From Basidiobolus meristosporus CBS 931.73 (taxonomy: Eukaryota; Fungi; Basidiobolomycota): DNA of 64,000 bases. A program made the position numbers and the translations under genes. Position 1 is the stretch's first letter; each line of letters begins with the position of its first letter. The stretch spans positions 1-64,000 of the forward strand of contig MCFE01000334.1 in assembly GCA_002104905.1 (NCBI GenBank). The letters are read 5' to 3'. The notes under the pieces are model-generated. The model did no database searches. It had not been told where the DNA came from and saw nothing but the letters and a program-made list of their open reading frames with translations. This document shows, piece by piece, positions 4,291 through 42,803 of the stretch.

Positions 4291-7200
4291 GGTTGAAACA
4301 GAGTTCAGAGCTTCCACAGAAAGTATCTTCTCAACAAGGAAGGTGACTTCTAGCTAAGAAAGGGTTAAGATAAAAGTAAAAAAGCCTGATATTCCACAGA
4401 GGATGAGAACACTGCTGTAGAAGTGAGATTCACTGCCTATAGTACATTTAGAGCCTGAGATTGAGGATATTAGTGAAAGTTATATCTTCTATTGGTATAG
4501 CAAACTCCCAATAGGCTGTTTCTCTATTAGAATACTGGCAGTTGTTGTATTCTGTTGATTAATCTCTACATTGTTGAACAAAGCCCAAGCTAACAATAAG
4601 ACAGCACAGCACTTCTTGAGTAGGACCACACTTTTTCCTTGATAAATGGTGCCAGGTGAGCCAAATAATCCATCTACTGGTGAATGATGTAATGTTGTGG
4701 CTAGACAAGTGGTGTGTTTCCACTAGTATCAGTAATGGGGGCTTTGAGGATTTACTACCACTTGATGCCAAGACCATCTCAGGATGCAACCTACCATGTA
4801 CATGGTATAAATGGCCTACCATCATGCTGCTGGCAACTAATGACCCATGGACCATCCTGATACCCGCATGTGTAACAGTTGCATGGCATTCACATGAGAA
4901 AATGCCACCATTGTAAGGTGTCCAACTTGTCAGGAATTCACCACCACTGGGGGAAAACATTGTTCACACTCCAGATATATTCCAGTAATACCTCATCTAA
5001 AGAGGCTCATGCAGTCCAACAAATATTGTGAAGCTATAAAGTACTGCACTCAGTGTCAATCAAGCGTAAACACATCCAATGTATTTGATGGCAAATATTA
5101 CAAACAGCTAAGAAGCAAGGGCCACTCTGAAGGAATGTTTGACCATGCCTTTGCTTTGTCACTTGATGGATTCTCATTAAACAAGTACTCTTCCATCAAA
5201 TCCTGCTAGCCACTGATTCCCATCAACGTGAATCTGCCATCTATCTTATGGCTTCAGAGCAGGAATCTGATGGTAGTGATACTGGTATCTGGGCCCAAAT
5301 TAATGTCCAACCTGGATAGCTACCTGTATCCATTACTGGATGAATTTTGTATGCTTTCCAGCAGGATAACATTGAATGGCTGTCATGTCAAGGCACATAT
5401 TGTTATCTGTATTGGAGATACTCCAGCCTTCAGTATAATAGCTGGCTTTTCTGGGCACAATGGACAGGATTGCTGTCAAATGTGTGAGATTCAGGGGACC
5501 AACTGCATAACTCACACACATTATCATTACCCAAACACCAACACTGAGAACATCATTTTTCTGGAGTGATAGCGTACAGAAGTCAGCATGCAATTGTAGA
5601 GAAGATGGAAAGCTATAAGCCATTGACTTGAATATGGAATTAATGGAAACCAGAGATACTTAAGATAGATAGCATCTATTGGAGCCAAAGCTTTCCACTG
5701 GCAGCAATGCATTTGCTTTTCAGCAATATCAATATACTGATGACCAAGTTGTACCTGGCACATTTCAAGCTAAATAAGCCCTTTGAGCTACTGGAGAAAT
5801 TTGAAAGAATTGGCATGATTTTGCACAGTATCAGCTATCCTAAGCACTTCAAACAGGCTCAAATCAATATTCATTTTCATATGTACATGCAACAATACAA
5901 ATGAAAGGACTGGATGAACTGGATAGGTATTTATTCAATTGGCTTTCTGAAGCCATTCCTGCCAAGTGTACATTGGAAGCATCAGGAGTCATATGTGGAC
6001 GTTGTAGGAGTATTTATCTAGAAGCAGATCACCAATGTTAACTTGATGCATCTACAGCCATTGTGCAAGGAGTTTGTGAAGGCATCTGAGCTGCTATACT
6101 ACAAAAATAAAGTTGAACACATAGATCTCTGCTGCTACTGTTTCCATTATCTATTGCATCCTACTTGGTGTGTTTAAAATACTGGACCTTGCTCCACCTT
6201 TTCAGAGTTTCCTATGGAGTGGATGTGTGGGGAGATAGGAAGACAAGTCAAGTTGCAGGTACTACCATATCCCAATCTAATCAAGGATATTACCTTCAAG
6301 TCCATCATGGATGTGATAAGTTGGTGCATGGAGCATAGTCAGGAATAGTTGGAAATACTGAGGACAGATGTGCACATGGAGACACCTATGCCTATATCAT
6401 TAAGAAGCTAAGCAGCCCCAATGTATGGGTAATAAGTGAAGTAATGCAAAGTTGGGTTAGGTGCAACAAGCAACTAGTTTTTACTAGGAAACTACATCAA
6501 ACTATATTGGGTTTCTCCTGGTCATAAGCCAATTTCTACACCATTCAGTATGGATTTTATATAAACAACAGTCAGAGTGCACCTACACAGGAGCCTAGAG
6601 TCCAGCAGGGAGAAGGAGGATATTAGACTTGTTGCATTGGATAGTGCCACACAGTGCCATGAATGCCAAATGATGCCATAGGGTGCCAGAGAGGCCAAGT
6701 GAACCTATACTTAGCCACCAAGTGTGCAACATAGCTCTGCATCTTCATGCAAAGCAGCCCCTGTGTTTCACCTATGATGCAGGGCCAACACACATTGGGT
6801 CAGAACACACAGTTCAAAGCAAACAACCAGTACTTGAAAGTCAGGAAGGAAGTAGCTTAGTTGTTGCTATCATTTGTGATGATCCAAACAACTCATATTT
6901 TTTTCAACCCAAATCAAGCCATTGCAAACCAGTGGTCACTAAATTCTTGGTACAACTAATATGAAGGATGTCTCACATAGATAGAACCTATAAATAAGTA
7001 CACTGCATACTTAAACATCATCTGTAATACCAGTTCAGCTATTTGATCTGTCTTATACCTACCTTGGTTGAGTACTAGCTATGACACCTAGTCCAATTGC
7101 TGAAATCAGGGATTCACTTGCACAATGTGTAAAATGAGATATTTGGTACTTTTGAACCAATCAATCTCTGACATACTGTCCAATTGGAGAGATAGTGCCA

Positions 7201-7995: not shown

Positions 7996-9064
7996 TGTAG
8001 TGGGGTGACAGTGACACCCACTGACAGATGTGCTCATTCCCTTATTTTCTACTTCCCTATATCTCTACTACACTTATTTTAGTTTTATTCTATTTTTCTT
8101 ACCCAATCAGTACTATCCCATAAGCCAGTTGACTATCACACCTGCTTACCTTATTGCATAAGTTGCCCCTCACTTTATGTAGATTACTAGCTATAAGTGC
8201 TTCTATATTAGGCAAGTACCTGCGCCAGTACCTGTGACACATAATCAACCCATGTCACCATCCCTACCATTTCCATACCATATATGGTATCCCTATGTTA
8301 CACAGGTTTCAGAATACTGATTCTTGATTGGTTGGATGTGCTCTGCCGCTTAAAACCTTCCAGCACCTACTTAGAGCATTCTTGGGTCATTCTGATGTCA
8401 TTAAGATTTCCATTGATATCCAGAACCTTCTGGAATATCATGCTTAGTAATCACTTAGCCAGTGAGAAAAGTATATAAGGAAGGCTATCCCTCAACAATA
8501 AATCATCATCCCTTTTATCAATATACCAACTTGTTGATTAGTGTGATCACTGCTACCTGCTGCCACCTGAACTTCCAACCCCAGACCACAGGACACTCCC
8601 AGGAAACTGCACTGACAGCCAACTGACCTTGGAGGCACTACATGTGAGGAATACTCAGAGTAGGTATCTTTTATTATATTTGATTCTTTCCCAAGTTTGT
8701 TCTTGTACAGGCAAAGATACTTTTCTGTCTTTGTAACTATTGACCACAGCTGCATTCTTATAAAGTCCCTGCTGGTGGAGTTTACAGTTGTTTTGACTTT
8801 AGAAGCTCTAGTACATTGTCATCTCAAAGGATGCTGAACCCAGCTCATACTTTTGTTAAGACGCCAACTAAGTTGGGGATTGTAGCTCAATAGTTTTCCC
8901 TTGACAAGCTTGTGGCTTTATTCCCCTTCACATTAGATTAGAGACAGAGCCCAAGTATTCCTAGCAAGCTTTTGCCAGAGGTTATTGCACCCAGTGAACA
9001 CCCCACACACAAAACACTTGAGAAGTGTTGGACGTATCTCTCCTTGGACCTATACACCACCACA
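7996..9064 (+). mobile_element. Solo LTR (~1.07 kb, family L1070) with 4-bp TSD CCAT; strand is relative to the other family copies
   Basis: TGTAGTGGGG start, ...CACCACCACA end, CCAT on both sides. Homologous to 23211-24280 and, inverted, to 63806-64000. Confidence 0.85.
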
Positions 9065-9374: not shown

Positions 9375-10090
9375 CCCTATGAAAAGTCTCAAACTTGGAA
9401 TTCATTTGATTTTCAGCCAGTATGCAGCTGGTATTCTAACAGTACTTAGCTGCTAATCAGCCGGTGCTTTTTGCTCAAATATTCAGTTGCAATTTTTGAT
9501 GGAAGTAGTGGGCATCTAGTCACCAAATCTGGCATTAATCCTGGTTGGACTAGTCTCCTCTTGGAGAATATATCTGCTAGTCTGCCCAACTGCTAGTACA
9601 TGAAATATTCTGCTGGCCTATATGTAATTTTCTTGTTAGGGAGTGATAATACCAATGGTGCAAGGAAAGATAGAAAAAGAATATACCATTTGGCATATTG
9701 GAATGGCAGCATTATAGGGAGCTAGCTGTAGGCTGCTGTAGTACCATTTACATGCCAAAGTGGCTTCCAATGAGGCTGTCACAACATAGTCAGGTTTCTT
9801 GCCATAAAAGTGGTTGTATGTATTGGCTGCTTAGGACTGTTTAAATAAGCTTAGAGCACACAAAGACTGTTAGAAGCCATGCAGCTCATGTCAAAAAACT
9901 GGTGAAACACTGTCAAGTTCTTATCTTTGCTTTATCAGTAAAATCAACAAGTTGCCACCACAATTCCATCATAAGATTGTATAGAGGGTCAGTAATTACA
10001 AGCTGCTAGAATAATGATAAACTCACTGTAAAATTATAATGGCTATTCAGGACTAGTTCCACATGCAGGACCACATTACTTTCCATATGG
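9375..10090 (+). mobile_element. Short non-autonomous CMC-family derivative
   Basis: Starts CCCTATGAAAAGTCTC, as at 60728. Carries the subterminal block also seen at 27620-27930. Ends in a degenerate TTTCCATATGG. Confidence 0.45.
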
Positions 10091-10712
10091 ATTTGTGTGC
10101 ATTGACTGGCTGTTAGGTCTTTTTCAAACTCCTTACTTCTGATGCTTTCACACTCCATGCATATGGATTTGTTTGTTCACTTAAATCTTCAGATGATATT
10201 CAATCATAGCTTGTACTGATCTATACCAGCCTCAAGACCCATCACTAGCGCTGAGCTCAACTCCTCACTCAAAAAGTAAACCATAAAGTCCCACCATTCC
10301 ATATGCTCCTCTGTCCAAACACCCCATGCCAATGTCTCTGAAAAAACTCTATGGCTGTATGCCATTGTCTGTTCACTGGTTCCCATACACTATGGTCATC
10401 TGCCAGCACTGCAAGGTCTTACATTTCACCTGCCAGTCTTTGCAATAAATCCTTGCAATACTAAAGTGCATTTTTTTCAGCACTGCTCTTGGAGATGCTC
10501 TGCAACCTATTGGTGTCATTGTAATAAACATCCAGCCTCTTAGCATAGATGCCTGGCTTACCAGTGGGAACACTGCAATGTCTACTATAGAGGAGATAAA
10601 AGATGCAATAGAAGAAGAGCCTTTGACTGCAAGCTTCTATACACTAGGGGAGGCTAGCACAGCTGACTGCATTTTGGACACCTGCAAAAACTGTTGTGGG
10701 AATTTGTGCTTC

Positions 10713-11081
10713 TGTTACAAGTCTTGGTATAAGAGTTGTAGAGGAATAGGGAGTTTAGCTAGTATTTCATTCACTAAAACTTGAACTGATCTTTATTGTG
10801 GTTCCAGCAGCTCCTTATATACATTTTGCCAGATCAATGGCTGACTAGTTGTATTTCCTAATGTAGGTTGTGGCTGAGGACTCATTTGATTGCATCATCA
10901 TCACCCAATAAGATCCTACTTAATATATCTATATCTGTCTGATAAGGATCTGCTGATTCATTTGCTGACTAATGCTACCAATTTCATAGATAATACTAAT
11001 ATACTGATAACCTAAACATATAACTAATTGATTTGACTAGAAGCTGATCTACCTTAAACATTCAAGCAGCAGATCATAACA
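10713..11081 (-). repeat. 3' LTR of the gypsy element
   Basis: TGTTACAAGTC...GATCATAACA. About 25 differences from 21903-22270 by hand count, including a CCA/CTG pair that points to an ancestral CCG. Confidence 0.92.
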
Positions 11082-12936
11082 TTCTCCCCTACTAAAGCTG
11101 AGAGAGGTCTCCTGAATCTCTTCTCTTGTGATACCAACATCTTGATGGCTCAGTATTATTAGCAAGTCTTGCAAGCTTGAGTCAGTCTCTATGAACAAAA
11201 TTTTTCCAGATATTCCCTTGTTTATCCACCAGTTGGTAGGTTGCAAATGGACATTCTCTGATGATCCTGAATGGTCCTGTCCATTGTGGCTGAAACTTCT
11301 TCCAAGTGTTGTTTCTTAGCAATACAAAGTTTCCAACTGTCAATGCTTCTGGTGCTATAGTCTTATCAAATCTCTGCTTCATATTTTCTGCACTTTGAGA
11401 TACTTTGGCCTGTGCCTCTTGTTGTCTTTGTTCCAATTGATAGTGTTTACTGGGCTGACTAAGCTCATCATCTAAGGCATCTGTAAGCTTGGGTTGTGTG
11501 AGATCTCCTGGAATCCTTGATTTACATGCATAAACTAAGTAAAATGGTGATTGTTGGGTAGTGTTGTGCACTCTAACTCTGCAGGCAAAAAGTGCTTGAT
11601 CTATATACTCATCCCATCTACTGTCAGCTCCATTTGCATACTTGGTCAGCATTTTTCCAAATCATCCATTAATGTGTTCAGTGACCCCATTAGTTCTGGG
11701 GTGATATGCTGAGGTTTTCAAGTGTTTAATCTGCTGCATTTCTGGGTAAGCCTCTAATGTCTTTGCCATAAAGTTTGCTCCTCTATCAGATAAGATTTCC
11801 ACAGGGCATCCAAACTTCATCAGGATCTCATGGTAAATGAAACTTGCAACTTCTTGTTCACTGGCTATTGCTACAGCTTTAGCAACTGGCCATTTAGTGG
11901 CATGATCATTTGCTACTAGGATCTAATGGTTGCATTTCCTGGTGGTTGGCAGTTTTCCAATAAAGTCAACTCCCCATCTCTCAAATGATCTTACAGGCTC
12001 CAAAGGGAAGAGTTTGGCAATTCTTTGTGGCTGGCCTTGACTGATTTGGCAGTTTTGGCATATTTTCACTATCTTCTCAATATCTTGTTTCATTCTGGCC
12101 CACCATGCTCTGGGTTTCACAAGGCTATAGGTTCCTTCAATCCCAAAATGTCCATATCCATTGTGTAGCTTATGTATTAAATCCAGGTGAGCAACATAAA
12201 GACAATAGGCAATAGGGCTTCCTTCATTTATTTGGTAGAGTGTTTCATCCTGTACAACAAATTTGCTGGCTTCATCCCAGATTATTTACTTCATCTCTTC
12301 ATCCAGCTCATTAGGAATGGCTTGGCCCTCCAAGTATTGTGGTAATAAGCTAGACCAATCTGATTCATGCACCAAGTTGAGTTGAACCACTAGTTCTAGT
12401 CTTCATAAAGCATCAGCAACCGTGTTACTATTCCCAGGGCAGTAGACAATCTCCAAGTCAAATTGCTGAATGTATTCACTCCATCTTGTCATTCTTCTGG
12501 ATAGAACCTTCTGAGCAAATATATAGTTCAGTGAGGCATGATCAGTCTTTACTGTACATTTGACTCCTTCAATATAGCATCTCCAGGTCTTCAGGCAGTG
12601 TATTATAGCAAGCATCTCCTACTCATGCACAGGATAGTTTTGTTCTGCTGAGTTCAGTTTCTTGGACTCAAAGGCAACTGGATAGTCCTTTCCCTTGTGT
12701 TCTTGGTTTAGTACTCCACCAATTGCATAATCTGAAGCATCTGTGCACCGGGTAAACTCTTTTCTGAAGTCAGGTACTCATAAGCCTGGCAGCTTAGCAA
12801 GTTCATTCTTGAGCATCTGAAATGCAGTCTCACAAGCAATGTCCCACTTGAAGGTGTTGTCTTTCTTGAGGATATCAGTTAAAGGGGCTGCAATGCTTGC
12901 AAAGGACTTGACAAATCTCCAATAATAGGAAACCAG
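11082..12936 (-). pseudogene. Gypsy pol 3' half: end of RT/connection, RNase H, integrase (HHCC, core, GPF motif); stops and frameshifts
   Basis: LVSYYWRFVKSFASIAAPLTDILKK; LAIIHCLKTWRCYIEG..TDHASL; WARMKQDIEKIVKICQNCQ; FERWGVDFIG; KFQPQWTGPFRII. Confidence 0.92.
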
Positions 12937-13463
12937 TGGTAATAGTGTGTAAAGAGCCGTATAATAGTGCGTGTAATGTGACGGGGGTAGAGTATGCGTC
13001 AGGGATAGGGTTAATGCCGTTGTTGGAGTGTAGGAAGAATCCAATGGAGGCAATATTAATGGCAAAGAAAGTAGGGTTAGAGTATGAGGTAAATATGCCA
13101 GAGCCAAAAGAGATGTTAAGACAATGGGTATCACAGGGGGTGTTTATGATAAACGTAGGATTTATGGTGGGGGTGAATTGTGATAAATTTTTGGCAAATC
13201 ATAGAATATTGTGGGAAGAGTTTACGAGGGAGCTGTTAAAGTATATATATGTGAAGAGGGGAGGGAGAATAGTAACAATATTAATAGGGATGGATGCAAT
13301 AAATTTAGCAGATTGCGTAGGGTCAAAGTATTTGACAAAAGTGGGGAAGATAGGGGATATGAATGGGTTGGATAAAAAGTTTGAGGAGGAGAATATATTT
13401 ATAAGGGTGAATGAGATGTTGATATATGAGATGGAGACAATGCCGATAGTGTGGTATCCATAA
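12936..13463 (+). CDS. Uracil-DNA glycosylase family-1-like protein, 5'-truncated at the junction, with altered catalytic motifs
   Basis: VVIVCKEPY ~ VVILGQDPY; LRQWVSQGVFMIN ~ L..WA.QGVLLLN; WEEFTRELL ~ WE.FTDAVI; ILIGMDA ~ FLLWG..A; F..VNEML....PIVW ~ the C-terminal PIDW motif. No HPSP motif. Confidence 0.8.
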   Translation: MVIVCKEPYNSACNVTGVEYASGIGLMPLLECRKNPMEAILMAKKVGLEYEVNMPEPKEMLRQWVSQGVFMINVGFMVGVNCDKFLANHRILWEEFTRELLKYIYVKRGGRIVTILIGMDAINLADCVGSKYLTKVGKIGDMNGLDKKFEEENIFIRVNEMLIYEMETMPIVWYP

Positions 13464-13544
13464 ATGGGGAATGGTTGAAGAAGGTAAGAAGTTATTTTTT
13501 AAAAGGTGTGGGCATGGAAGACAGAAGTATTTTAGGCGTTGAAG

Positions 13545-14050
13545 TTTAGGTTTGATCCAAGATGAGTTAGTTAGCTTTAAAAAAGTTTTATACGCTCAAG
13601 TTTAATATGAGATGAGTTAGTTAGCTTTAAACGCTTAAGTTTAATATAAGATGAGTTAGTTAGTTTTAAAAAAGTTTTATACGCTCAAGTTTAATATAAG
13701 ATGAGTTAGTTAGTTTTAAAAAAGTTTTATACGCTCAAGTTTAATATGAGATAAGTTAGTTAGTTTGATCCAAGATGAGTTAGATCTAAGATAAGTTAGT
13801 TTGTTTTAAAACAGGTTTAGACATTTAGGTTTGATCCAAGATAAGTTTGTTTGTTTTAAAACAGGTTTAGACGTTTAGGTTTGATCCAAGATAAGTTTGT
13901 TTGTTTTAAAACAGGTTTAGATGTTTAGGTTTGATCCAAGATAAGTTTGTTTGTTTTAAAACAGGTTTAGACGTTTAGGTTTGATCCAAGATAAGTTAGT
14001 TTGTTTTAAAAAAGTTTTATACGCTCAAGTTTAATATAAGATATGTTTGA
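13545..14050. repeat. Tandem array of two related 50-bp units (A and B) in the viral insert
   Basis: A = agatgagttagttagttttaaaaaagttttatacgctcaagtttaatata; B = agataagtttgtttgttttaaaacaggtttagacgtttaggtttgatcca; about ten units, some truncated. Confidence 0.9.
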
Positions 14051-14130
14051 TCTAAAATATTAACATCCGATAAAAAACACTTTTTAAAAAGTATAATAAT
14101 CAAAAGCTGATATGATCATGCACACAACAA

Positions 14131-15194
14131 TTATTTATTTAAGGCAGCAACATTTGTAACAGCACTAAACAAAGAGTTTGCAACATAAACGTCATCTTCG
14201 CCAATAGTTTCCATAATCTTTTGGATATCTTCCTTGTCCAATTTATCAAAGTCTTGCTTGCCATTCTTACGAATAATCATGACAACATTCTTATCACCCA
14301 ATACTTGGTCCACTTCCTTGATAATAGTTTCTCCAGGTTCCTTATCAACTGGAGCGGTTTCAACGGGAACCGATGATGAAGGAGCACTAATGTTTACAAC
14401 TGGTGGAGTAGTTGAAATGGCATTTACCTTATTGGCCAAGTCAGAAATGCATTTAGTTAAAACAATAACACTGTTGCAAAGTTCTTGATATGCATTTGTT
14501 TGACCAGCCAAAAAATTATTTAAACTGTTAAAAGCAGATTTTAGAAAGACATCTTTGTTATCAGCAATTCTAGAAAGTTCGTTGACTAAAGGTGTAAAAT
14601 CAAACGCTTGGGGTGTTGGCAAAGATAAAGCCTGGTATCAGAGGTAGGAATAGAAAAGGGTTGTTGGGGTTGTTTGTATTTAATCTTAACACTACCAAGA
14701 TGTTTAATACCCAAATCAGTTGGCACATTGTTATTAACATTAGATGATTTTGGTTTGGATGGTTCAAGATCTCCCAATCCACCAAGGCCACCAAGGCCAC
14801 CAATACCACCCAATTTTTTGGGCTTGTTCAAACCGCCAATAGATTTAGGTTTAGTAGGCTTGTCTTCAGACTTGTCGCCAATGTCCCCCAATCCACCTAA
14901 TCCACCAAGGCCACCAAGACCACCTAATATAATGGGTTTGCCCAATCCACCTAAACTTTCAAGCTTTGATTTATTGGTATTAATATCCAGAACTTCATCA
15001 GAAGGAAAATCCAAAGCCAAAGGTTTGACAAAAGGTTCAGGTTGTTTGTCAACAGTATTGGGAAAAGATAAACCGCCCAAACCACCAAGACCACTTAACT
15101 TTTTACCACAGTTAGAATCCATTAAATCTTCGTTAATAACATATCCTCCATCACTACTATAATCTGATGAAAAAAAGTCTTCTATATCAGACAT
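14131..15194 (-). pseudogene. Viral orphan gene (~355 aa) with GGLGGL repeats, split by a 1-bp frameshift near 14637
   Basis: ORFs 14586-15194 and 14131-14622 overlap. Restoring one base (GAT AC to GAT TAC) gives ...PTSD-YQALSLPTPQAFDF..., one continuous frame. Confidence 0.65.
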
Positions 15195-15300
15195 TTGATC
15201 AAAGTTCTTAATGCTGAAAAAAATTTTAAAAAAATATATTAGTTATCATTTCAAATCTGCCAGATGCGTCTATTATACAATACATGCAATAAAACGTGAA

Positions 15301-15666
15301 TTAATCAAAGATTTTACTTTTGTTGTTTAATCTTTGGGCAGCAGATGCTAGTGACGCCAAAGCATTGTCAGGGATTTTATTTCTAACTAAAGGAATAGTA
15401 TCGTTCCGTCAAGAATGTTTGGATTTGGGGGATATAAGTACACCAGAGTTGTTTAAAGTCATACCACATACTTTATCTATTTTGCTATCTTTCCAGACAA
15501 CAGAACCTTCACGGTTCTTAACTTTAAGAATGTTGGCATTTATAAGTCTAACGCTAGCATCGGTACCTTTGCCGATAACATTGGCGAAATCATAAAACGG
15601 GTTGTCAGAAGGTCTAAAAGTAGGAGAATAGTTAGCTTGAATAGAATAAAATTTGGAAGAAGTCAT
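15301..15666 (-). pseudogene. Viral orphan gene (~121 aa) with an internal TGA at 15409-15411
   Basis: After KHS-TGA the frame stays open for 35 codons (RNDTIPLVRNKIPDNALASLASAAQRLNNKSKIFD) up to a TAA at 15301-15303. Confidence 0.6.
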
Positions 15667-15838
15667 AGTATACAGAGAAAAAAGAATGTTTGCTTAGTAT
15701 AATAAACCAGATTGACCCTCTCTCACTTTAAAGTTTTGGATAAAAAAAGAAATAAGTTTTTAACAACAATGAGAAGAAAAAAAACTTGAACGGAAAATAT
15801 ATATATGTGTATTACAAATTTGTGCCAAGAGTAAGAAC

Positions 15839-16681
15839 ATGATGACAAGTGAGTTTGAGAAATTTGTATCCGAGAACATTTCTTATGGAGTATGTTTTGT
15901 TCAAGAAGAGCCATTTAGTAAGTATTTTGTGGATGCGGAATTTGTGTCAACAAAGTTCATAGAGATGGAGATAAAGAAATTGGAGGAGGAATGTGGGACA
16001 ATATCGGATAAGATTAGAATGGCATTTAAGATATTAAAGGGTTCTAAGCAAGAGTTGGAGAACAGATTGGAGAATATTAAGGGAGGATGTATAAGATACA
16101 TAGACCAGATACACCAAGAGAATGGTAAGACTGTAATAGTTTTGCCAAAAGCAATGAGTGGGGGTAAATCTAAGAAAGCGTTAAAGAAACTGTTGAATGA
16201 TGCGGTGAACCAGTTAAAGTTTAATATTTTATCTGTAACTAAAGCAATGCACGTATATGATATTTTTGTGTCAAGAATTAGATATGGGATAACAGAAATA
16301 ATATCTAGTATAGAGATACATTACAATGAATATCCGAATAAGTTTACGTTAACAACGGAGCCAGATTTAAAATATGATAACATGGGGTATATCACGGATA
16401 AGTTGGATGTGATATTAAATGGTATGGTGAAGGCGGTGATAGCGGATATAAACAAAGGAGAGATAAAGTTTATAAGATTGGAAAAGGTTTTAGAATTGTT
16501 GAAAGTGGAGGATACAGATGACTTGATAAAGATAGCAGTAATAGCTGGAACAAGAGCAAATACTGGGTTAGGGGAGTTATTTTTGAGAAGAATATTGGAT
16601 GATGGGTATGAGCGAGAGGAGTTGGATAGGCTCATGGAGGAGAGTAATTTAAAGAGATATGTGGAGAAGTATGAAAACTAA
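15839..16681 (+). CDS. FEN1/XPG (Rad2)-like flap-endonuclease-fold protein, 280 aa, with several catalytic acids replaced
   Basis: YFVDAE ~ IAIDAS; KTVIVLPK ~ KPVYVFDG; TEPD ~ EAE; ITDKLDVILNG ~ ATEDMDCLTFG; IRLEKVLELLKVEDTDDLIKIAVIAGTRANTGLG ~ the H3TH motif IDLEKVLEELGL...LIDLAILLGTDY..GIG. Confidence 0.62.
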   Translation: MMTSEFEKFVSENISYGVCFVQEEPFSKYFVDAEFVSTKFIEMEIKKLEEECGTISDKIRMAFKILKGSKQELENRLENIKGGCIRYIDQIHQENGKTVIVLPKAMSGGKSKKALKKLLNDAVNQLKFNILSVTKAMHVYDIFVSRIRYGITEIISSIEIHYNEYPNKFTLTTEPDLKYDNMGYITDKLDVILNGMVKAVIADINKGEIKFIRLEKVLELLKVEDTDDLIKIAVIAGTRANTGLGELFLRRILDDGYEREELDRLMEESNLKRYVEKYEN

Positions 16682-16845
16682 ACAAGATATATGAGTTATA
16701 TATATGTGAAAGAAAAATAGGTTAAGTTTTTGAGATAAGAACGTTAAGAATATATGAGTGAAAAAGTATGAATAAAAAAATAAATCAGAAGTTGTTAGAA
16801 GTAAAAAAAAAGTTTTGTAAAAGGTTTAAACCAAAGTTAGTTCAG

Positions 16846-17030
16846 GTTAAAGAAAAGATTTTTAAAAAGGGTTTAAATTAAAGTTATAGTTTAAGTTATA
16901 GAAAAGATTTTTAAAAAGGGTTTAAATTAAAGTTATAGTTTGAGTTAAAGAAAAGATTTTTAAAAAGGGTTTAAATTGAAGTTATAGTTATAGTTAAAGA
17001 AAAGATTTTTAAAAAAGGTTTAAACCAATA
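16846..17030. repeat. Tandem array, 4 x 49 bp
   Basis: Unit gaaaagatttttaaaaagggtttaaattaaagttatagtttaagttata begins at 16852, 16901, 16950 and 16999. Confidence 0.92.
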
Positions 17031-17068
17031 CTTATATTTCAAGTTAAAAAAAAATACTTTTTGCATTT

Positions 17069-17290
17069 TTACAACAGTTGGCATATTAACTTGTAATACT
17101 TTATTAATCTTGGTCTAATCTCTTGTGGGTGAACCTTTTGTACATAAAGTCTTAACTCTTTTATGTTGTCTTTCCCAATCTGCAAAAAACAATCATACGC
17201 TTTCTCCATCGTCGGTTCATGTAAATTATTTCTTACTAACGGTTCTAATCTTGACAATATTAAATCTAACCTATCCTGTTTTGAATCCAT
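17069..17290 (-). CDS. Small viral orphan ORF (73 aa)
   Basis: ATG at 17290, TAA at 17069; packed between the array and the SWIB gene; no recognisable motif. Confidence 0.55.
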   Translation of the reverse strand: MDSKQDRLDLILSRLEPLVRNNLHEPTMEKAYDCFLQIGKDNIKELRLYVQKVHPQEIRPRLIKYYKLICQLL

Positions 17291-17327
17291 CCTAGACAAA
17301 ATATTTTTTAAAAAGTTTTAATTACAA

Positions 17328-17942
17328 TCATTCCATAACTTTTCTGGCCATAGCAATAATAGTTTTTCTGTTGTCTTTGGCAATATATTTTTGGTCTTTC
17401 TCTTTATCATGTTTCAACAAAGGAAACTCAGAAAGATCTAATAATTCAGCCAAGAAATTATCCATGTACATACCAACATCAGTCTTTAAGTTGCTCAAGT
17501 TAATGTATTGGGTTAACATAGTTCTGACATCGGTTAAACAAGTTTCTTTGTTGGGGTTGTATCTTAAACTAAGATCTTTTAACGTTGAAGCTTTGTCGTG
17601 CAACATTTTAACACGTTGGTTAGTTGGTACAGACTTGGTAAAGAAGGTTATCTTTTTTTCTTTGTTGTCATCAGATTGCTTGTTCTTTGGCTTAGATTTG
17701 ATAATTTTTAAGGGAGATGCGCATACAGGATTAATAACTTTGGTTTGTAAATTCTTTTCAGTGATTTCCATTCTTTGGCTGATAATTTTGGCAAGATCTT
17801 TATTGTTACCAATTTTTCTAATCATGTTGCAGGCATCTCGAAAATCTTCGAATTGATTTTTGGTAAATCTGAGTTTAAAAACTCTTTCTTCAGAATGTCC
17901 AATAGGTTCTTGAATAGCTTCACCGGAAACGTTTACAGCCAA
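17328..17942 (-). CDS. SWIB/MDM2-domain protein; frame open to 18020 with no upstream ATG
   Basis: C-terminal LTDVRTMLTQYINLSNLKTDVGMYMDNFLAELL ~ SWIB consensus RTEV...LW.YIK..NLQ......I..D..L..LF, preceded by a Lys-rich linker. Confidence 0.6.
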   Translation of the reverse strand: MAVNVSGEAIQEPIGHSEERVFKLRFTKNQFEDFRDACNMIRKIGNNKDLAKIISQRMEITEKNLQTKVINPVCASPLKIIKSKPKNKQSDDNKEKKITFFTKSVPTNQRVKMLHDKASTLKDLSLRYNPNKETCLTDVRTMLTQYINLSNLKTDVGMYMDNFLAELLDLSEFPLLKHDKEKDQKYIAKDNRKTIIAMARKVME

Positions 17943-18332
17943 TTTGCCTAAACTTTTGGCAAGAGAGAGGACATTATCAGAAGTATTGGATTTGGTTGCG
18001 TTTGTGCTTAAATCTGGAATTTACAGATACTTGATTTAAAAGTCAAAAATTGTAGAGTCAATCTTAAATATATCCAATAACTAGCAAGTAATTATAATCA
18101 CTTGAACATTATAATGGTAACTATATATTTTTTCAAATTCAAGAAATAATTTTATCATATTTATGTACCAAAAATATATATAATATGTTCAGTCATTCAA
18201 CATTTAACTTTTTTTACATAATAGTTTTTAAAGAAAAGTCTTTAATTAAGCGTTGATTTTGTTTGTCAAAAAAGTTTTTAATTAAACGTTAAATATAAGT
18301 TTTAATTTGTTTTTTAAATTCTAATTTTAAAT

Positions 18333-18422
18333 ATGATATTTGATGTTTGAAATTTGATGTTTGAAATTTGATATTTGAAATTTGATATTTGAAATTTGAT
18401 ATTTAATATTTGATATTTGATT
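18333..18422. repeat. 7-bp microsatellite (TTTGAAA/TTTGATA/TTTGATG)
   Basis: About a dozen consecutive heptamers between the SWIB gene and the Rpb1-C gene. Confidence 0.85.
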
Positions 18423-18458
18423 TTTAAAAAAGTTGTTCATATCTAATAAAGTTTAATA

Positions 18459-19538
18459 TTATTTATTCATCTTATTGTCTTCTGCTTTTTGCTCTATAAT
18501 ATCAAAGTTTGCATTTCCTGTTCCCAACGGTATTGTATTATTTATTATTATAGACAAATACACCAACCCTCCCTTGTCTACCAATTTGTGTTTTGTTGAT
18601 AAACGTAAATCTTTCTTAGCTTTCTCAAATGCCATTGATGATAAAAATCCTTTGTTGCTCAAATGCAAATTATTTTTTGTAAACGGTGTTACTTTTCCAT
18701 GCCACGTCATAAAATCCGCAATTAATGTTGGATGCAAAGAGTCTTTGTTGTACATTCTCAATAGTTCTTTCCGAATTGCTTTTCTAGCTGCCTCAACACC
18801 TAAATATCTCTCTACATCTTTAATATTATTAGAATAAATATCTTTTAGTTTTATCCCTCTTAGTCTTAACACCTCTTTTATATTTGATCCGTGAGTAATA
18901 ATTTCTCCTTTTCTGTTTGTTCCTATTTTTCTTATTCCAGATATGCCAAAAACTTTTTTGTCTAATGCCTGCAAACAATCTATTAACCCATCTTTGTCAC
19001 CATGATACACATCTATGATACCCAAAAACATTGGGGAATACGTAACATCATAATCTGGAAATAATGTATTACAAAATATTTCTAACGATCTAATTCCTAT
19101 TGCATATAATTTTTGCGGATCCAAATAAAATCTTATTTTTGTATTATTGCCTTGAAAATTTGCTACATCAAGAAACAAACCTAACAAAACACCAATCTTG
19201 TACCAAGAATCTTTGTTGTTTATGCCCAGAAAACTATTAGACATTCCTATAAGTAAACTTTTAAACGTTATTTCTGTAATATCTTTTGGTAGCACGGTAT
19301 CTGGTACATTTGATATAATCATAGATGACATCTTTTGCGTTGTTGGCAAGTCCATAATTTCTTTTATTCCTGGATGTAACATACAAATTTTGGTTCCAGA
19401 AAAACTTTTTGAGCTTGTTCCAGAAGTCTCAGAGTTGCTTTCCAACCCAATTGCATGGAAGGAGCTCAAGTTACTTTGTGTGGCAACTTGCATAACTTCT
19501 TGAGCAGATATAATTCCTATCGGTGTTCCAGGTTCCAT
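18459..19538 (-). CDS. DNA-directed RNA polymerase largest subunit, stand-alone C-terminal part (Rpb1-C / A''-like), 359 aa
   Basis: PGTPIGIISAQEVMQVATQSNLSSFHAIG ~ [26 protein letters not shown].AG (trigger loop); GSNIKEVL; YSNNIKDVERYLGVEAAR; LIADFMTWHG; FLSSMAFE; IPLGTG. An in-frame TGA lies two codons upstream of the ATG, followed by AT-rich intergenic DNA. Confidence 0.93.
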   Translation of the reverse strand: MEPGTPIGIISAQEVMQVATQSNLSSFHAIGLESNSETSGTSSKSFSGTKICMLHPGIKEIMDLPTTQKMSSMIISNVPDTVLPKDITEITFKSLLIGMSNSFLGINNKDSWYKIGVLLGLFLDVANFQGNNTKIRFYLDPQKLYAIGIRSLEIFCNTLFPDYDVTYSPMFLGIIDVYHGDKDGLIDCLQALDKKVFGISGIRKIGTNRKGEIITHGSNIKEVLRLRGIKLKDIYSNNIKDVERYLGVEAARKAIRKELLRMYNKDSLHPTLIADFMTWHGKVTPFTKNNLHLSNKGFLSSMAFEKAKKDLRLSTKHKLVDKGGLVYLSIIINNTIPLGTGNANFDIIEQKAEDNKMNK

Positions 19539-19722
19539 GATTCATGCATATATATATTTGTCAACTTTTTGAACATAACATTTTTTGGATTGAACATTTA
19601 AATCTCATTACTAAATAAGATCTATTTAAGATTCTAACTTTAAATCACCCATGTCCCAAGAAAATTTAGGAAAATAAGCATTATCTGATATTGTTGAATC
19701 TGCCAACAAGATTATTGCGGAC

Positions 19723-20160
19723 ATGATTTATACAGTCATGTCTGACTTTAGCAGCAAACTTATTAAAGAAGGCTTAGATTCCGATACTGTTCTCAAATGC
19801 GCTAACAACCTTAGCTCCAATTATCTTGGTGAAGGCGTTAAAATTAGAAAAAAGCCTACTCCTAGAGCTCCTAAGGCTCCTGGTACTACTAAATCTTCTA
19901 GTACTACTAAAAGTTGTTCCAAGCCTACTCCTAAAACTCTTACTTGGGAACCTCATCCTGGAGACCCAGAGAATTATTCTTTCACCAGAGACATTGTACT
20001 TAAGAAGGGCCTTCCTGTACGTTATAACAAGAACAAGAAGGTTGTCTATGTTGGTGGTAAAGATGAGGTATATGACCTTGAAGTTGAAGATGCTATGCTC
20101 TTGAGTAACTGTAACCTTGTCTGTGATATGTCTTTTGCTGGTGTTCCTAAAGCGGAATAA
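19723..20160 (+). CDS. Viral orphan protein (145 aa) with a K/P/T/S-rich central linker
   Basis: Clean ORF with strongly T/C-ending codons, divergent from Rpb1-C. Confidence 0.7.
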   Translation: MIYTVMSDFSSKLIKEGLDSDTVLKCANNLSSNYLGEGVKIRKKPTPRAPKAPGTTKSSSTTKSCSKPTPKTLTWEPHPGDPENYSFTRDIVLKKGLPVRYNKNKKVVYVGGKDEVYDLEVEDAMLLSNCNLVCDMSFAGVPKAE

Positions 20161-20209
20161 ATAAGATATGTTTTTGTCTTAAAACTATTTTTTAAAAGAT
20201 CTTAGACCA

Positions 20210-20335
20210 AAGTATATTTAAAACCAAATTTAAAAACTATATTTAAAAGATCAAAAACCATTTTTAAAAACCAAATATCAAAAACCAAATTTAAAAAACA
20301 TATTTAAAAAACTATATTTAAAAACTAAATTATGC
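20210..20335. repeat. Degenerate 12-13-bp tandem repeat (AAAAACCAAATTT / AAAAACTATATTT)
   Basis: Visible run of A-tract units downstream of the ORF ending at 20160. Confidence 0.7.
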
Positions 20336-20370
20336 AACTTAAATTATTTTTTAACCCATGTTTTCTTAAC

Positions 20371-20627
20371 CTAAGAGTTTTATAACTACTTTACTCTTAC
20401 GACTTATAACCCTTTTTAACCCAAGAGTTTTATAACTACTTTACTCTTACCACTCATAACCTTTTTTAAAAACACCTTTTTTTATTATTAACTCTCATTG
20501 TATATACCTTTTATAACTACTTTACTCTTACAACTTATAACCCTTTTTAACCCAAGAGTTTTATAACTACTTTACTCTTAAGACTTATAACCCTTTTTAA
20601 CCCAAGAGTTTTATAACTACTTTACTC
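20371..20627. repeat. Tandem array of 50-bp units, cut by the right junction
   Basis: Unit ccaagagttttataactactttactcttacgacttataaccctttttaac begins at 20371, 20421, 20552 and 20602; the last copy is truncated at TTTACTC. Confidence 0.9.
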
Positions 20628-20936
20628 AAACTTGCAGTTCCTAGATATAAAGGCCTGTAGGTCTTCTTCAAAGTCATTGATCTTTGTCCTTACTAGCTGA
20701 GTAATAAGGTTGATTATGTGAGAGTTCCCATCAGCTGTTGAGACTGAAGTTGATTTGATGGGTTCCAAGTTGATTCCAGCATTCAAAGCAAATTGCTCTG
20801 ACATGTACTCATGTGATGCTCCTGGGTCAATCATGACCTTGGCAAGTACACCATTGATTACTCCATTCAGTTATAATAGCTTTCCTGAGTTTGAGGTCAT
20901 CTGGGACAGGTATTCTTCTGTCATATGGTAGGTGAG
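20625..20936 (-). pseudogene. Gypsy aspartic protease region, truncated by the insert
   Basis: LAKVMIDPGASHEYMS (D-[S/P]-G-A motif), in frame with gag beyond two TAA codons; ends ...SRNCKFE at the junction. Confidence 0.85.
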
Positions 20937-21845
20937 TTATGAGTCTTCTTCAAGTTCATCCTCCAAGGTACCATGCTCCAGGGCCTCAATATGGTTAAAG
21001 GCTCTAGATGGCTGGTGTCCATTTCTTCTCTGAGGGCAGTACTTTGCAATATGTCCCTGCTGGTGGCAATTGAAGCAAAGTCCTTTCTTCTTACATTCTT
21101 CTGAGGTAGGATTCTTCTGCCTAGCATCTATTTCCATTGGTACTGCTTCTGACTGTCTTCTTTCATAATGATTGTAGCCTTTCTGATTAGTCACTGCAGG
21201 CTTCCCAACTCCAAACATAGCTAAGTTGTAGTCAATGGCAATCTTGATGGCTTCTTCAATAGTCTGAGGTCTCTGGTAATTTGCTTCCTTGCAAGTTCTT
21301 TCTTTCAACCCATCAATAAAGTATTCAATTTGATTCAGGGGGTCCATTCTTTCAATTTGTCCAAGTAGAAATCTGTACTTGTAGATGTATTCTTGAACCA
21401 CTCCTTTCTGTCTGAGTGTTTTTAACTTCCTTCTTAGTAGTGTCTGCTGGTATGGAGATTCAAAAGCATGCTGAATCTCCAACATAAACTCATCCCAGGT
21501 AGAGATTGTAGAGCATCCCATCATAGTGGCTGACCTGATCTTGTTGTGGTACCACTGTAAGGCTGCATCTGCCAGGTAAGAAGCTGCATGATGCAACTTG
21601 CTTTCTGGAGCAATTCCTTTAGCTTTAAAAGCTTCATCAATCTGAAAGTGCCTAGTTCCCAGGTTTTCATTGACTCTGCCATGGTACTGGTTGACCTTCA
21701 CACTAAAGTTGCTCTTGACAGGGCTTTGCTGGCTCTGAGCCATGGTAGTCATTCCTTGTTGCTGTTGGCTGAGGATCTGGAGAAACTGTTGCTGTTGGGC
21801 TAGGATTTGCTGCATGGCATTCTTCCATTCTTGATTGTCCAACAT
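20937..21845 (-). CDS. Gypsy Gag (302 aa, open frame) with a CCHC zinc knuckle
   Basis: Retrotrans_gag-like YLADAALQWY...WDEFMLEIQHAF...LKTLRQKGVVQEYI; PMEID; CFNCHQQGHIAKYC. Confidence 0.92.
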   Translation of the reverse strand: MLDNQEWKNAMQQILAQQQQFLQILSQQQQGMTTMAQSQQSPVKSNFSVKVNQYHGRVNENLGTRHFQIDEAFKAKGIAPESKLHHAASYLADAALQWYHNKIRSATMMGCSTISTWDEFMLEIQHAFESPYQQTLLRRKLKTLRQKGVVQEYIYKYRFLLGQIERMDPLNQIEYFIDGLKERTCKEANYQRPQTIEEAIKIAIDYNLAMFGVGKPAVTNQKGYNHYERRQSEAVPMEIDARQKNPTSEECKKKGLCFNCHQQGHIAKYCPQRRNGHQPSRAFNHIEALEHGTLEDELEEDS

Positions 21846-21902
21846 CTTGAGGGTGGTTTCTTCTTTCTTCAGGAGGGAGGTTTTTAGTTATGCTGCTACC
21901 AA

Positions 21903-22270
21903 TGTTACAAGTCTTGGTATAAGAGCTGTAGAGGAAAAGGGAGTTTAGCTAGTATTTCATTCACTAAAACCTGAACTGATCTCTATTGTGGTTCCAGTAG
22001 CTTCTTATATACATTTTGCCAGATCAATTGCTGACTAATTGTATTTCCTAATGTAGGTTGTGGCTGATGACTCATTTGACTGCATCATCATCACCCAATA
22101 AGATCCTACTTAATATATCTATATCTGTCTGATAAGGATCTGCTGATTCATTTGCTGACTAATCCTACTGTTGTCATGGATAATACTGATATACTGATAA
22201 CCTAAACATATACTAATTGATTTGACTAAAAACTGATCTAACTCAAACATTCAAGCGGCAGATCATGAAA
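21903..22270 (-). repeat. 5' LTR of the gypsy element
   Basis: Direct repeat of 10713-11081; PBS immediately inside; outer terminal dinucleotide altered. Confidence 0.9.
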
Positions 22271-41600: not shown

Positions 41601-42803
41601 TGCAAGCTTAATAACTGTCTATGTGGACTCAGAAAATCACCAAAAGCCTGGAGTTGCAAGATAGATTCTTATTTGGAATCTTTGAGTTTCAAAAGGAGTA
41701 GTGCTGACTATAGTATATACTATAAGCCAGATAGAGCAAATTCAGCTCTATTAGCTCTATAATTGGATGATCTTTTTATAGCCACCAATAACCACAAAAC
41801 ATTGGTAGCAACTAAATCCAGCCTATCTAAAGAGTTCAGGATGTCTGATCTAGGAGAACTCAGCTACTACTTAGGGATAAAGTTCTTCATAGACAGAAGT
41901 ACCCAGGCTATCACACTAAGCCAATCCAAGTACCAAATGGAAGACTGTAAACCAGCAGCTACCCCAATGGAGACAAACATTAACTTGGTCAAAACGCAAC
42001 TAAATCAAGTGAGCTTGGTGCCATCTGAAAGCCCTGACTTTTCTTTTAATCTGTGGTCTGCAGTCAGATGTATATTATGCTTGGGACATGTCCAGATATC
42101 TTGTATTCAGTGAGAGTTGTCAGCCAGCATATTCAGAACTATGGATCTGATCATATTGCAGCAGTCTAGCAGATTTTTAGATACCTAAAAGGAGCTGCTG
42201 ATATCTGTTTAAAATACACTGATAAATACCACTTTTACATTCAATAAGTCATTAAGTGAAAACCACATAATCTATTTGTTCTCCCAATTGCTTCCAATAT
42301 CCCCAAGACTCTTCCAACACATAGTCCTTTGAGCAGCGGTAGTCATCTTTAACTTTGGCAGAGCAATAGTTCAGAAAGTCATTCTCCAGATGAGCAGAAA
42401 AGGATCCAAGGCAAAGTAGACACCAAGTGGACAGCAAGCTTGGGGCTCATAGCCTGTTGCAATATTCTGAGGAGTATTGGAGGTGATGTGGAGAACTAGA
42501 GGATTTATATGTTATACACATTTAGATTTATTGATCAAAAGTATGGTATTTATACTTTTGATCAAGTAGGGCAAACAAACATGTAGAGTTTCTTAAGGAA
42601 GGTCACAAGAATATGTGTCCAAAGTTTGGGGGCTTTTGGACAACTTTGAGAAAGATCATAATCTAGGTACCTGATAATTTGGTGAAAATATTCCAAGTAA
42701 ATCCCAACAAGAAATTTGGTCAGGACAGAATGCCAATCAGAGAATAAAATCTAGGTGACTAAGTTAGCATGAATATTTAGGTGACAACCTAATAATTACA
42801 ACA
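35651..42803 (-). mobile_element. Copia B, heavily decayed and internally deleted; LTRs 35651-35998 and 42455-42803; TSD TCCAA
   Basis: Paired inverted-orientation LTRs; PBS GGCTATGAGCCC; PPT-like GTTAAGTGCGAG; TCCAA at 35646-35650 and 42804-42808; gag relic KGL..ENIVVE and YQAFMYICQG. Confidence 0.8.
38411..42319 (+). mobile_element. Copia A (innermost): 5' LTR 38411-38758, PBS, gag-pol relics; RNase H and most of the 3' LTR deleted at ~42221
   Basis: PBS GGTTATGAGCCC; KLDGSNYIVWKVKM; CYINSGASKHLT protease; RT motifs; TSD CATAT/CATAG. Removing it restores the copia B frame (KDY-AHEN). Confidence 0.9.

Follow-up and report, generated by a model that had tools for sequence, protein, structure and literature searches.

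The 64,000-nucleotide stretch analysed here (the window; positions 1–64,000 of contig MCFE01000334.1, assembly GCA_002104905.1, of the fungus Basidiobolus meristosporus CBS 931.73) holds a compact cluster of genes inside a nest of retrotransposons, and raises the question of what this cluster is, how it came to lie there and whether it still does anything for its host. The cluster, referred to below as the block, spans ~7.7 kb (12937–20627), is AT-rich (31% GC) and carries genes on both strands. We find it very probable that the block is a dead fragment of a large nucleocytoplasmic-type double-stranded DNA virus, belonging to the fundsalphavirus lineage and endogenous in B. meristosporus. This reading draws on base composition, on the junctions of the block and on the synteny of its genes with those of related viral loci.

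The block stands out from both of its surroundings. Positions 1–43 kb and 58.5–64 kb form a nest of degraded retrotransposons with 39% GC, and the region between them, at 43–58.5 kb, is host DNA with 50% GC that encodes Svf1, a Sel1-repeat protein and a C2H2 zinc-finger protein. The block has a GC content of 0.313, compared with 0.39 in the flanking transposable element (TE) nest and 0.50 in the host-gene region. Stop-free stretches of at least 145 codons number nine within its 7.7 kb, compared with four in the 12.9 kb to the left and five in the 22.4 kb to the right, and every open reading frame (ORF) of at least 200 amino acids in the first 43 kb lies within it, with the exception of one gag ORF. 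Recognisable genes cover ~64% of the block; tRNA genes and similarity to phages were looked for and not found. The boundaries were set by comparison with a second copy of the surrounding retrotransposon (locus L006), to which homology stops at 12935/12936 and 20626/20627, within a few bases. A first-pass annotation of the same DNA, made without database searches, had described an AT-rich block with tightly packed ORFs on both strands at these coordinates, a description that our measurements confirm.

The RNA polymerase gene and its viral relatives

The gene that ties the block to a viral lineage is ORF F (18459–19538, minus strand), which is open and full length and encodes, as a stand-alone protein of 359 amino acids, the C-terminal part of Rpb1, the largest subunit of RNA polymerase (RNAP); this is the ‘RP1c’ of Gong et al. 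As the first-pass annotation had proposed, the product is an Rpb1 C-terminal subunit: it matches the Pfam family RNA_pol_Rpb1_5 (E 7.8e-20) and, among PDB chains, archaeal Rpo1C/A″ and eukaryotic Rpb1 (E 6e-19 to 4e-16). Scanned in full with HMMER, the library gave 2077 matches to ORF F, the best of which are stand-alone proteins of 320–390 amino acids covering the whole query, and the top ~60 library matches are all stand-alone proteins of 300–530 amino acids. The product is 81% identical to protein P0001, at a ratio of nonsynonymous to synonymous substitution rates (dN/dS) of 0.09. The N-terminal part, Rpb1-N, is encoded apart from Rpb1-C in two related loci (L002 and L010), and among the unsplit Rpb1 proteins that align with ORF F from end to end, the nearest is encoded on a contig whose genes form a mixture typical of giant viruses. 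Archaeal A″ (Rpo1C) is likewise a separate polypeptide for the C-terminal part of the largest subunit and gives the best match among solved structures (E 6e-19); however, ORF F begins ~60 residues further into the archaeal protein. Because the true relatives of ORF F sit in viral gene clusters, its split from the rest of Rpb1 is probably independent of the archaeal one.

Four ORFs of the block (A, E, F and G) have homologues in five to seven related loci, in conserved order and with E values of 1e-9 to 1e-70. The order of G and Rpb1-C is kept in all seven of the related loci, with the two genes always divergent (head-to-head), and ORF E adjoins Rpb1-C in L002. The closest relative, L005, is a 4.6-kb contig (Logan ERR14042384) that carries the Rpb1-C and G pair at 81% identity, scoring far better than the E values just given, together with an intact 841-amino-acid DUF5757 gene. 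Between the window and L005, dN/dS is 0.09 for F and 0.14 for G, at a dS of ~0.8–1.2. These low ratios indicate that the divergence arose under purifying selection, presumably in a replicating virus.

The gene content of the relatives was read from Pfam hits within stretches of ~20 kb around seven of them, the longer contigs lying mostly outside those stretches. A recurring set of genes surrounds the homologues: family B DNA polymerase (PolB), a D5-like primase-helicase (DUF5906/D5_N), Rpb2, the N-terminal half of Rpb1, Rpb5, a TFIIS zinc ribbon, a uracil-DNA glycosylase (UDG), an XPG_I-like protein, the DUF5757 protein, a methyltransferase-bearing protein, an SNF2-like helicase, DNA ligase and MutS. 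The polymerase subunits are short (Rpb1-N, ~576–640 amino acids; Rpb1-C, ~330–420; Rpb2, 850–970), the Pfam matches of the capping-type methyltransferase are flagged as faint, and the DUF5757 protein has no match in the PDB. L009 and L010 have D5, the SNF2-like helicase, the methyltransferase, RPB2 and RPB5, all of them near homologues of A, E, F and G; L002, L003, L007 and L008 have part of this set. The closest relatives of the four ORFs lie on metagenomic contigs; those of L009 and L010 measure 36–71 kb, the longest being 71 kb. Only one related contig came from a search of IMG/VR, and word-index searches for D and E found close copies only. The core of the first-pass annotation, that the block is a piece of a large DNA virus, is therefore upheld: relatives of Rpb1-C, UDG, E and G are syntenic with PolB, the D5-like gene, Rpb2 and Rpb1-N.

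One pair of related loci has an unusual setting. L003 (JGI 3300065428, Ga0604925_0000958; 1–20987) and L004 (Logan SRR13312978) hold a viral block of ~16 kb, running from PolB to DUF5757, that is flanked in this soil metagenome by a HET-domain gene and an NB-ARC/TPR gene. Such flanks are typical fungal NLR-type genes, so the L003/L004 block looks integrated in an ascomycete-like genome. The Rpb1-C of this locus has been deposited as a protein of a ‘Phenylobacterium sp.’ metagenome-assembled genome (MDB5428868.1), a label that is probably a binning error. To our knowledge, an ascomycete-like host phylum is not among the six phyla of the 2020 paper that described the fundsalphaviruses.

The short viral stretch between host-like genes in L003 bears on a different origin, namely that the block is the remnant of a cytoplasmic linear plasmid or another small polymerase-bearing element of the yeast killer-plasmid type. 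In keeping with such an origin, the block is AT-rich with closely packed genes on either strand, and the RNAP is split and much reduced. However, yeast-type linear plasmids have terminal inverted repeats, a protein-primed PolB and a fused Rpb2/Rpb1-like RNAP, whereas no terminal inverted repeats were found in L003, and the relatives, with contigs of 36–71 kb, encode a separate Rpb2 along with Rpb5, TFIIS, a D5-like primase-helicase, ligase, MutS and an SNF2-like helicase. Published PolB and RNAP trees place the lineage with nucleocytoplasmic large DNA viruses (NCLDVs) (PMC7017919). We regard a plasmid origin as highly improbable. The idea of a small self-contained element of ~16 kb, as L003 might suggest, was set aside on similar grounds: L009 and L010 carry the same genes on 36–71-kb contigs together with ligase, MutS and helicase.

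The lineage itself has been described. Gong, Zhang and Han (2020; Virus Evolution 6:veaa008, PMC7017919) screened 1,006 fungal genomes with PolB and named as ‘fundsalphaviruses’ a group of endogenous NCLDV-like elements from fourteen species in six phyla, B. meristosporus and B. heterosporus among them. In their account, the common genes of the group are D5, a D6/D11-like SNF2 helicase, a SAM (S-adenosylmethionine) methyltransferase, RPB2, RPB5 and an RNAP subunit 1 split into RP1n and RP1c; PolB places the group near Pithovirus, which with related Nucleocytoviricota is given as its nearest exogenous kin, and RNAP trees place it with NCLDVs; and retrotransposons lie beside the elements, which contain stops and frameshifts, so that a role for retrotransposons was speculated (PMC7017919). 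The window fragment shares with these elements the host species, the split RNAP subunit 1, the adjoining retrotransposons and the stops and frameshifts, and the relatives of its genes sit with D5, the SNF2-like helicase, the methyltransferase, RPB2 and RPB5. Because the gene set recovered here is that of Gong et al., both the lineage and its presence in this species are already described, and the earlier suggestion of a possibly undescribed lineage is not supported (PMC7017919). The locus differs in that the published set was screened with PolB and consists of genes flanking PolB, whereas the window locus is without PolB, the gene whose clade defines the group; the fragment may therefore lie outside the set of Gong et al. 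UDG, the FEN1-like gene and the E and G families are also outside the published list of common genes, and nesting within a retrotransposon in place of its reverse transcriptase (RT) is a further difference.

Membership of the Nucleocytoviricota is visible more fully in the relatives than in the block. RNAP is the only core gene in the window; the relatives add PolB, the D5-like primase-helicase, TFIIS and the methyltransferase. Neither a double-jelly-roll capsid gene nor an A32-type ATPase gene was found by Pfam hits in the window or in the ~20-kb stretches around the seven relatives. The label ‘giant virus’ used in the first-pass annotation is loose, as the longest related contig is 71 kb and no capsid or packaging gene occurs in the stretches read. 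Finally, a 109-amino-acid annotated protein of Basidiobolus ranarum (P0168, K7432_017622) is 81% identical to part of ORF E; from this match and the 81% match to L005, the lineage extends to at least one further Basidiobolus-type data set.

Insertion into a Ty3/gypsy retrotransposon

The block lies inside a single Ty3/gypsy element on the minus strand (10713–22266). Read in the direction of the element, this comprises a 5′ long terminal repeat (LTR; 21903–22266), a gag gene and protease remnant (20628–21845), the viral block, a remnant of RNase H and integrase (11078–12935) and a 3′ LTR (10713–11077), all on the minus strand. The gag ORF, of 302 amino acids, includes a zinc knuckle and matches Retrotrans_gag (4e-13), Ty3_capsid (3e-12) and zf-CCHC in Pfam. 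The RNase H–integrase remnant keeps one frame over 580 codons, with seven in-frame stops and no frameshift seen. The two LTRs are 93.7% identical to each other and 81–87% identical to those of other copies of the family; their terminal dinucleotides are the usual ones, and at their inner edges are a purine-rich tract and a site resembling a primer-binding site. In its LTR pair, its gag with zinc knuckle, its protease, RNase H and integrase, and their order, the element resembles other Ty3/gypsy elements; it differs from them in the replaced RT, the seven stops in RNase H–integrase and the lack of a detected target-site duplication. Further LTR-like repeat pairs, 87–89% identical, occur at 35733–35998 and 42538–42803 and at 164–2028 and 40012–41888; the first 43 kb is accordingly a nest of several retrotransposon insertions.

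What the viral DNA displaced can be read from another copy of the family, L006 on contig MCFE01000368.1, in which the points matching 20626 and 12935 are separated by 1,068 bp that code for RT. The viral DNA therefore takes the place of an RT segment of ~1.07 kb. The first-pass annotation had placed a viral fragment in a fungal chromosome; that the block is embedded in a fungal contig bears this out, with the amendment that it is nested in a Ty3/gypsy element and not directly in host DNA.

The simplest account of this arrangement is that viral DNA was joined into a chromosome break inside the Ty3/gypsy element. Repair of the break would have lost the ~1.07 kb of RT-coding sequence, the viral piece taking over its place. 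Judged by counts of damaged genes, the block has since drifted roughly neutrally: one gene is cut off at the junction, two contain premature stops, one may be frameshifted and one is without its usual start.

L006 contains a second viral fragment. Its positions 9500–11640 (2.1 kb) match window positions 15338–17581 at 92–93% identity, and at one end another TE cuts into the fragment, while its other end is formed by the outer end of an LTR that interrupts gene E. Its copy of gene D has a shifted 3′ end. As neither junction is held in common with the window, the L006 fragment is not a copy of the chimeric retrotransposon.

The existence of this second fragment bears on two other accounts of the locus. 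According to the first, the block is an assembly chimera, or contaminating viral DNA joined to a fungal TE. Both junctions do lie in repeats of the kind that lead assemblers into error (a multi-copy retrotransposon and tandem arrays). However, the sequences on either side of the block add up to a single element whose LTRs match, and MCFE01000368.1 has a diverged second copy of the viral DNA set among other TEs; in addition, the viral genes bear stops and a truncation, and the lineage has been published as endogenous in this species, with stops and frameshifts (PMC7017919). We consider such an artefact exceedingly improbable.

According to the second, the retrotransposon was itself the vehicle: during reverse transcription, the template would have switched onto a packaged viral transcript, and the resulting chimera would then have integrated. 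The block does stand in for an interior part of the element, on either side of which orientation and register agree; the LTR divergence (6.3%) is close to the divergence between the viral copies (5.5%), and a role for retrotransposons was speculated by Gong et al. (PMC7017919). Against capture of this kind, the genes on both strands, the spacers and the arrays resemble genomic DNA and not a transcript. The L006 copy, which runs from another TE to an LTR end, has neither junction, and a nearby family copy in L006 has its gag–LTR on the wrong side. An element without RT could, moreover, move only in trans, and no further copy of the chimera was seen. Template switching therefore strikes us as quite unlikely. 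That the locus is a clean record of a DNA virus endogenised via a retrotransposon, by capture during the replication of the element, is a claim to which we give only a slim chance. If it were true, and if junctions of this type recurred in further fundsalphavirus fragments, large DNA viruses would regularly enter fungal genomes by way of retroelements.

The remaining genes and the decay of the block

At the left junction, ORF A (12936–13463, plus strand) is an open frame encoding a family-1 UDG, as the first-pass annotation had recognised from its fold. It matches the PDB entries 6lyd and 5x55 (‘probable uracil-DNA glycosylase’; E 7e-7), the NCBIfam ung models (E 8e-11 to 1e-9, over positions 55–205 of 210) and PHROG 12143 (E 1e-8). 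Its N-terminal part is missing: the ORF starts ~55–90 residues into the family, which shows that the gene was cut at the junction. Homologues occur in five related loci (L003, L007, L008, L009 and L010; alignment A6), and two short motifs common to all five are not kept in the window copy. With these conserved active-site motifs lost, the window UDG is probably inactive, as judged from the alignment. The UDGs of the relatives carry their own version of the short motifs of the active-site region, and those of L009 and L010, which are the best matches of the window ORF (E 3e-27 and 1e-18), are yet unflagged as UDG in the precomputed Pfam hits.

Two further minus-strand features lie between ORF A and ORF D. 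At 14131–15194, two ORFs of 163 and 202 codons overlap in different frames, the second rich in Gly-Leu repeats; they represent two separate genes or a single frameshifted one. Public annotation places here a single 334-amino-acid product with a short intron, a model that may bridge the frameshift, as the surrounding region otherwise looks intron-less and viral. The pair has no match in Pfam, PHROG, NCBIfam or the PDB and no counterpart in the related loci. At 15370–15666 is the remnant of a small conserved gene, homologous to a 133-amino-acid protein of L002 (tblastn E 2e-11) whose gene sits at the corresponding position. The remnant contains one or two premature stops and no recognisable domain.

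ORF D (15839–16681, plus strand; 280 amino acids, open and full length) had been assigned a FEN1/XPG fold. Its profile has a single match in the PDB at E ≤ 10, the flap endonuclease 4wa8 (E 0.75, weak); it matches NCBIfam fen_arch (E 0.005) and, by hhalign, the XPG_I-like proteins of L003 and L008 (E 0.02–0.03). Every one of these FEN1-type matches covers the same stretch of 40–60 residues, at approximately residues 205–270. No Pfam family, XPG_N and XPG_I included, matches at E ≤ 1, and an AlphaFold2 model built on a four-sequence alignment reached a mean predicted local distance difference test score (pLDDT) of only 37, with a PDB fold search giving nothing but noise. The earlier assignment thus finds weak, mutually consistent matches but no Pfam match, and a very divergent FEN1/XPG-like protein is plausible but unproven on the profile matches at hand. 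A paralogue, P0162, in the same genome is 90% identical.

ORF E (17328–17942, minus strand; 204 codons) is a conserved family gene with homologues in L002, L003, L007, L009 and L010 (E 1e-27 to 2e-16; alignment A2). It has no ATG at the start used by its relatives, and its first ATG would give a product of 165 amino acids. The SWIB domain attributed to it in the first-pass annotation was not recovered: neither ORF E nor three of its relatives match SWIB in Pfam at E ≤ 10, and PDB profiles, PHROGs and NCBIfam gave no match to SWIB or any other domain. Its single-sequence AlphaFold2 model (pLDDT 46) was too poor to help, and a PDB fold search with it returned noise only. ORF G (19651–20160, plus strand) is likewise a conserved family gene, with homologues in L002, L003, L005, L007, L009 and L010 (alignment A7). 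It carries one premature stop in its N-terminal part and has no match in Pfam, PHROGs, NCBIfam or the PDB.

The spacers between these genes are rich in tandem repeats. An array with a unit of ~50 nt and ~9–12 copies follows the UDG gene (13484–14097; array also given as 13626–14047); another, with a 49-nt unit and ~5 copies, lies at 16799–17053 and recurs in the second genomic copy, where the number of units differs. From 20214 to the right junction at 20627, the sequence consists of short AT-rich repeats and a tandem array with a 50-nt unit (20366–20627). Beyond the G gene, L002, L003, L005 and L007 have the DUF5757 gene, which is absent from the window. The IMG/VR relative L008 has dispersed inverted repeats of ~100 nt between its genes (1550–2050, 5220–5600 and 8500–8870), and intergenic repeats may be a trait of the lineage.

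Base composition is also strongly asymmetric between strands. GC skew reaches +0.5 to +0.75 at 12850–14050 and 15700–17050, and −0.65 at 20200–20650. At third codon positions, the skew is 0.95 in the UDG gene and 0.71 in D, compared with −0.29 to 0.32 in the other genes, and the L006 copy of D shows the same strand-specific depletion of C. Mutation of the repeat-induced point (RIP) type was considered as the cause of the AT-richness and set aside, as the substitution spectra are only moderately transition-biased and the C depletion is common to the second copy.

How much of the block is still functional? Several of its genes are damaged: the UDG gene has been truncated once by the junction and has lost two family motifs, and premature stops occur in G (one) and in the small gene remnant (one or two). 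The two genomic copies differ by 5.5%, with a transition bias of 3:1 among the substitutions. If half of this, 2.8%, arose in each copy, ~2.2 new stops would be expected in D–G, and the probability of none is 0.11; three or four still-open genes are within expectation for a divergence of a few percent. Between the genomic copies, dN/dS is 0.47 for D (255 colinear codons, nominal p 0.02) and 0.60 for the shared part of E. These values are not clearly below the neutral value, because a 3:1 transition bias lowers the neutral dN/dS.

These data bear directly on whether viral genes have been domesticated, that is, whether Rpb1-C, D and perhaps E have been kept by selection for the fungus. F and D are full length and free of stops, compared with seven stops in 580 codons of the surrounding retrotransposon, D has the between-copy dN/dS of 0.47 at a nominal p of 0.02, and public annotation calls the open ORFs as genes. 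However, the contrast with the retrotransposon is blunted by the fact that the TE copy may be older or already defective, the absence of stops in D–G is not unusual under neutrality (P 0.11), and the counting of sites takes no account of the transition bias. The state of the neighbouring genes also speaks against selection, with stops in G and the small gene, a truncated UDG and an E without its usual start. Finally, the partner subunits of Rpb1-C are missing from the locus, and an Rpb1 C-terminal piece without them has no plausible function. No evidence of domestication was found, and we judge it very unlikely. As read from the sequence, the block fits a fairly young, decaying fossil and not a domesticated gene set.

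What the block carries is part of a viral transcription and DNA-repair set (Rpb1-C, UDG and a probable FEN1-like nuclease) together with at least three conserved genes of unknown function. The partners that its genes would need, Rpb1-N, Rpb2, PolB and the primase-helicase, are not part of it. The block would do nothing for the host and persist as a molecular fossil.

Several points weigh against the reading of the block as a dead, endogenous fundsalphavirus fragment. With regard to its identity, the window contains no PolB, capsid, packaging ATPase or other hallmark gene, so that membership of the lineage, as assigned here from sequence, rests on one hallmark gene and on synteny with metagenomic contigs; in addition, cellular Rpb1 proteins, archaeal and eukaryotic, score about equally to the nearest unsplit Rpb1 of viral type. 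With regard to decay, D and F are both intact, and a dN/dS of ~0.5 for D is compatible with a small measure of selection. The near-absence of C from the plus strand of the UDG and D segments, and of the arrays beside them, is a feature for which the reading does not account. With regard to the insertion, a target-site duplication was looked for at both ends of the LTR element (10708–10712 and 22266–22270) and not found, which leaves a recombinant of two elements conceivable; the near-perfect complementarity of the flanks disfavours it.

The fragment among large DNA viruses of fungi

Two comparisons place the fragment among better-known viruses. Pithoviruses are rich in non-coding intergenic repeats. 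The block resembles them in its tandem 49–50-nt arrays, as does L008 in its dispersed ~100-nt repeats, and the lineage shares with Pithovirus NCLDV-type replication and transcription genes. It differs in that its RNAP subunits are much shorter, with the largest one split, and in that no capsid, packaging or morphogenesis gene was seen. Larger endogenous viral regions are known from other fungi, including a giant region of 1.5 Mb in Rhizophagus irregularis (PMC10640383) and the Mycodnaviridae/Mycodnavirales of zoosporic fungi (PMC13524828). As in those cases, Nucleocytoviricota DNA has been fixed in fungal chromosomes, often in TE-ridden form. However, the Rhizophagus and zoosporic-fungus regions are asfarvirus-like and Imitervirales-like and extend over hundreds of kilobases (PMC10640383, PMC13524828), whereas the window holds a 7.7-kb fragment of a different lineage.

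A literature search by accession found nothing on this locus, and the published picture for B. meristosporus is unchanged by it. What the locus offers anew is the anatomy of the insertion, a wider set of conserved genes and a list of relatives. The conserved gene complement of the lineage is widened by UDG, the E and G families and a probable FEN1-like nuclease, and nesting in one retrotransposon makes both junctions datable and open to comparison among strains. With this locus, one more fragment, in a fairly good state of preservation, joins the fossils of a lineage of large DNA viruses associated with fungi, from which no free virus is known to have been isolated.

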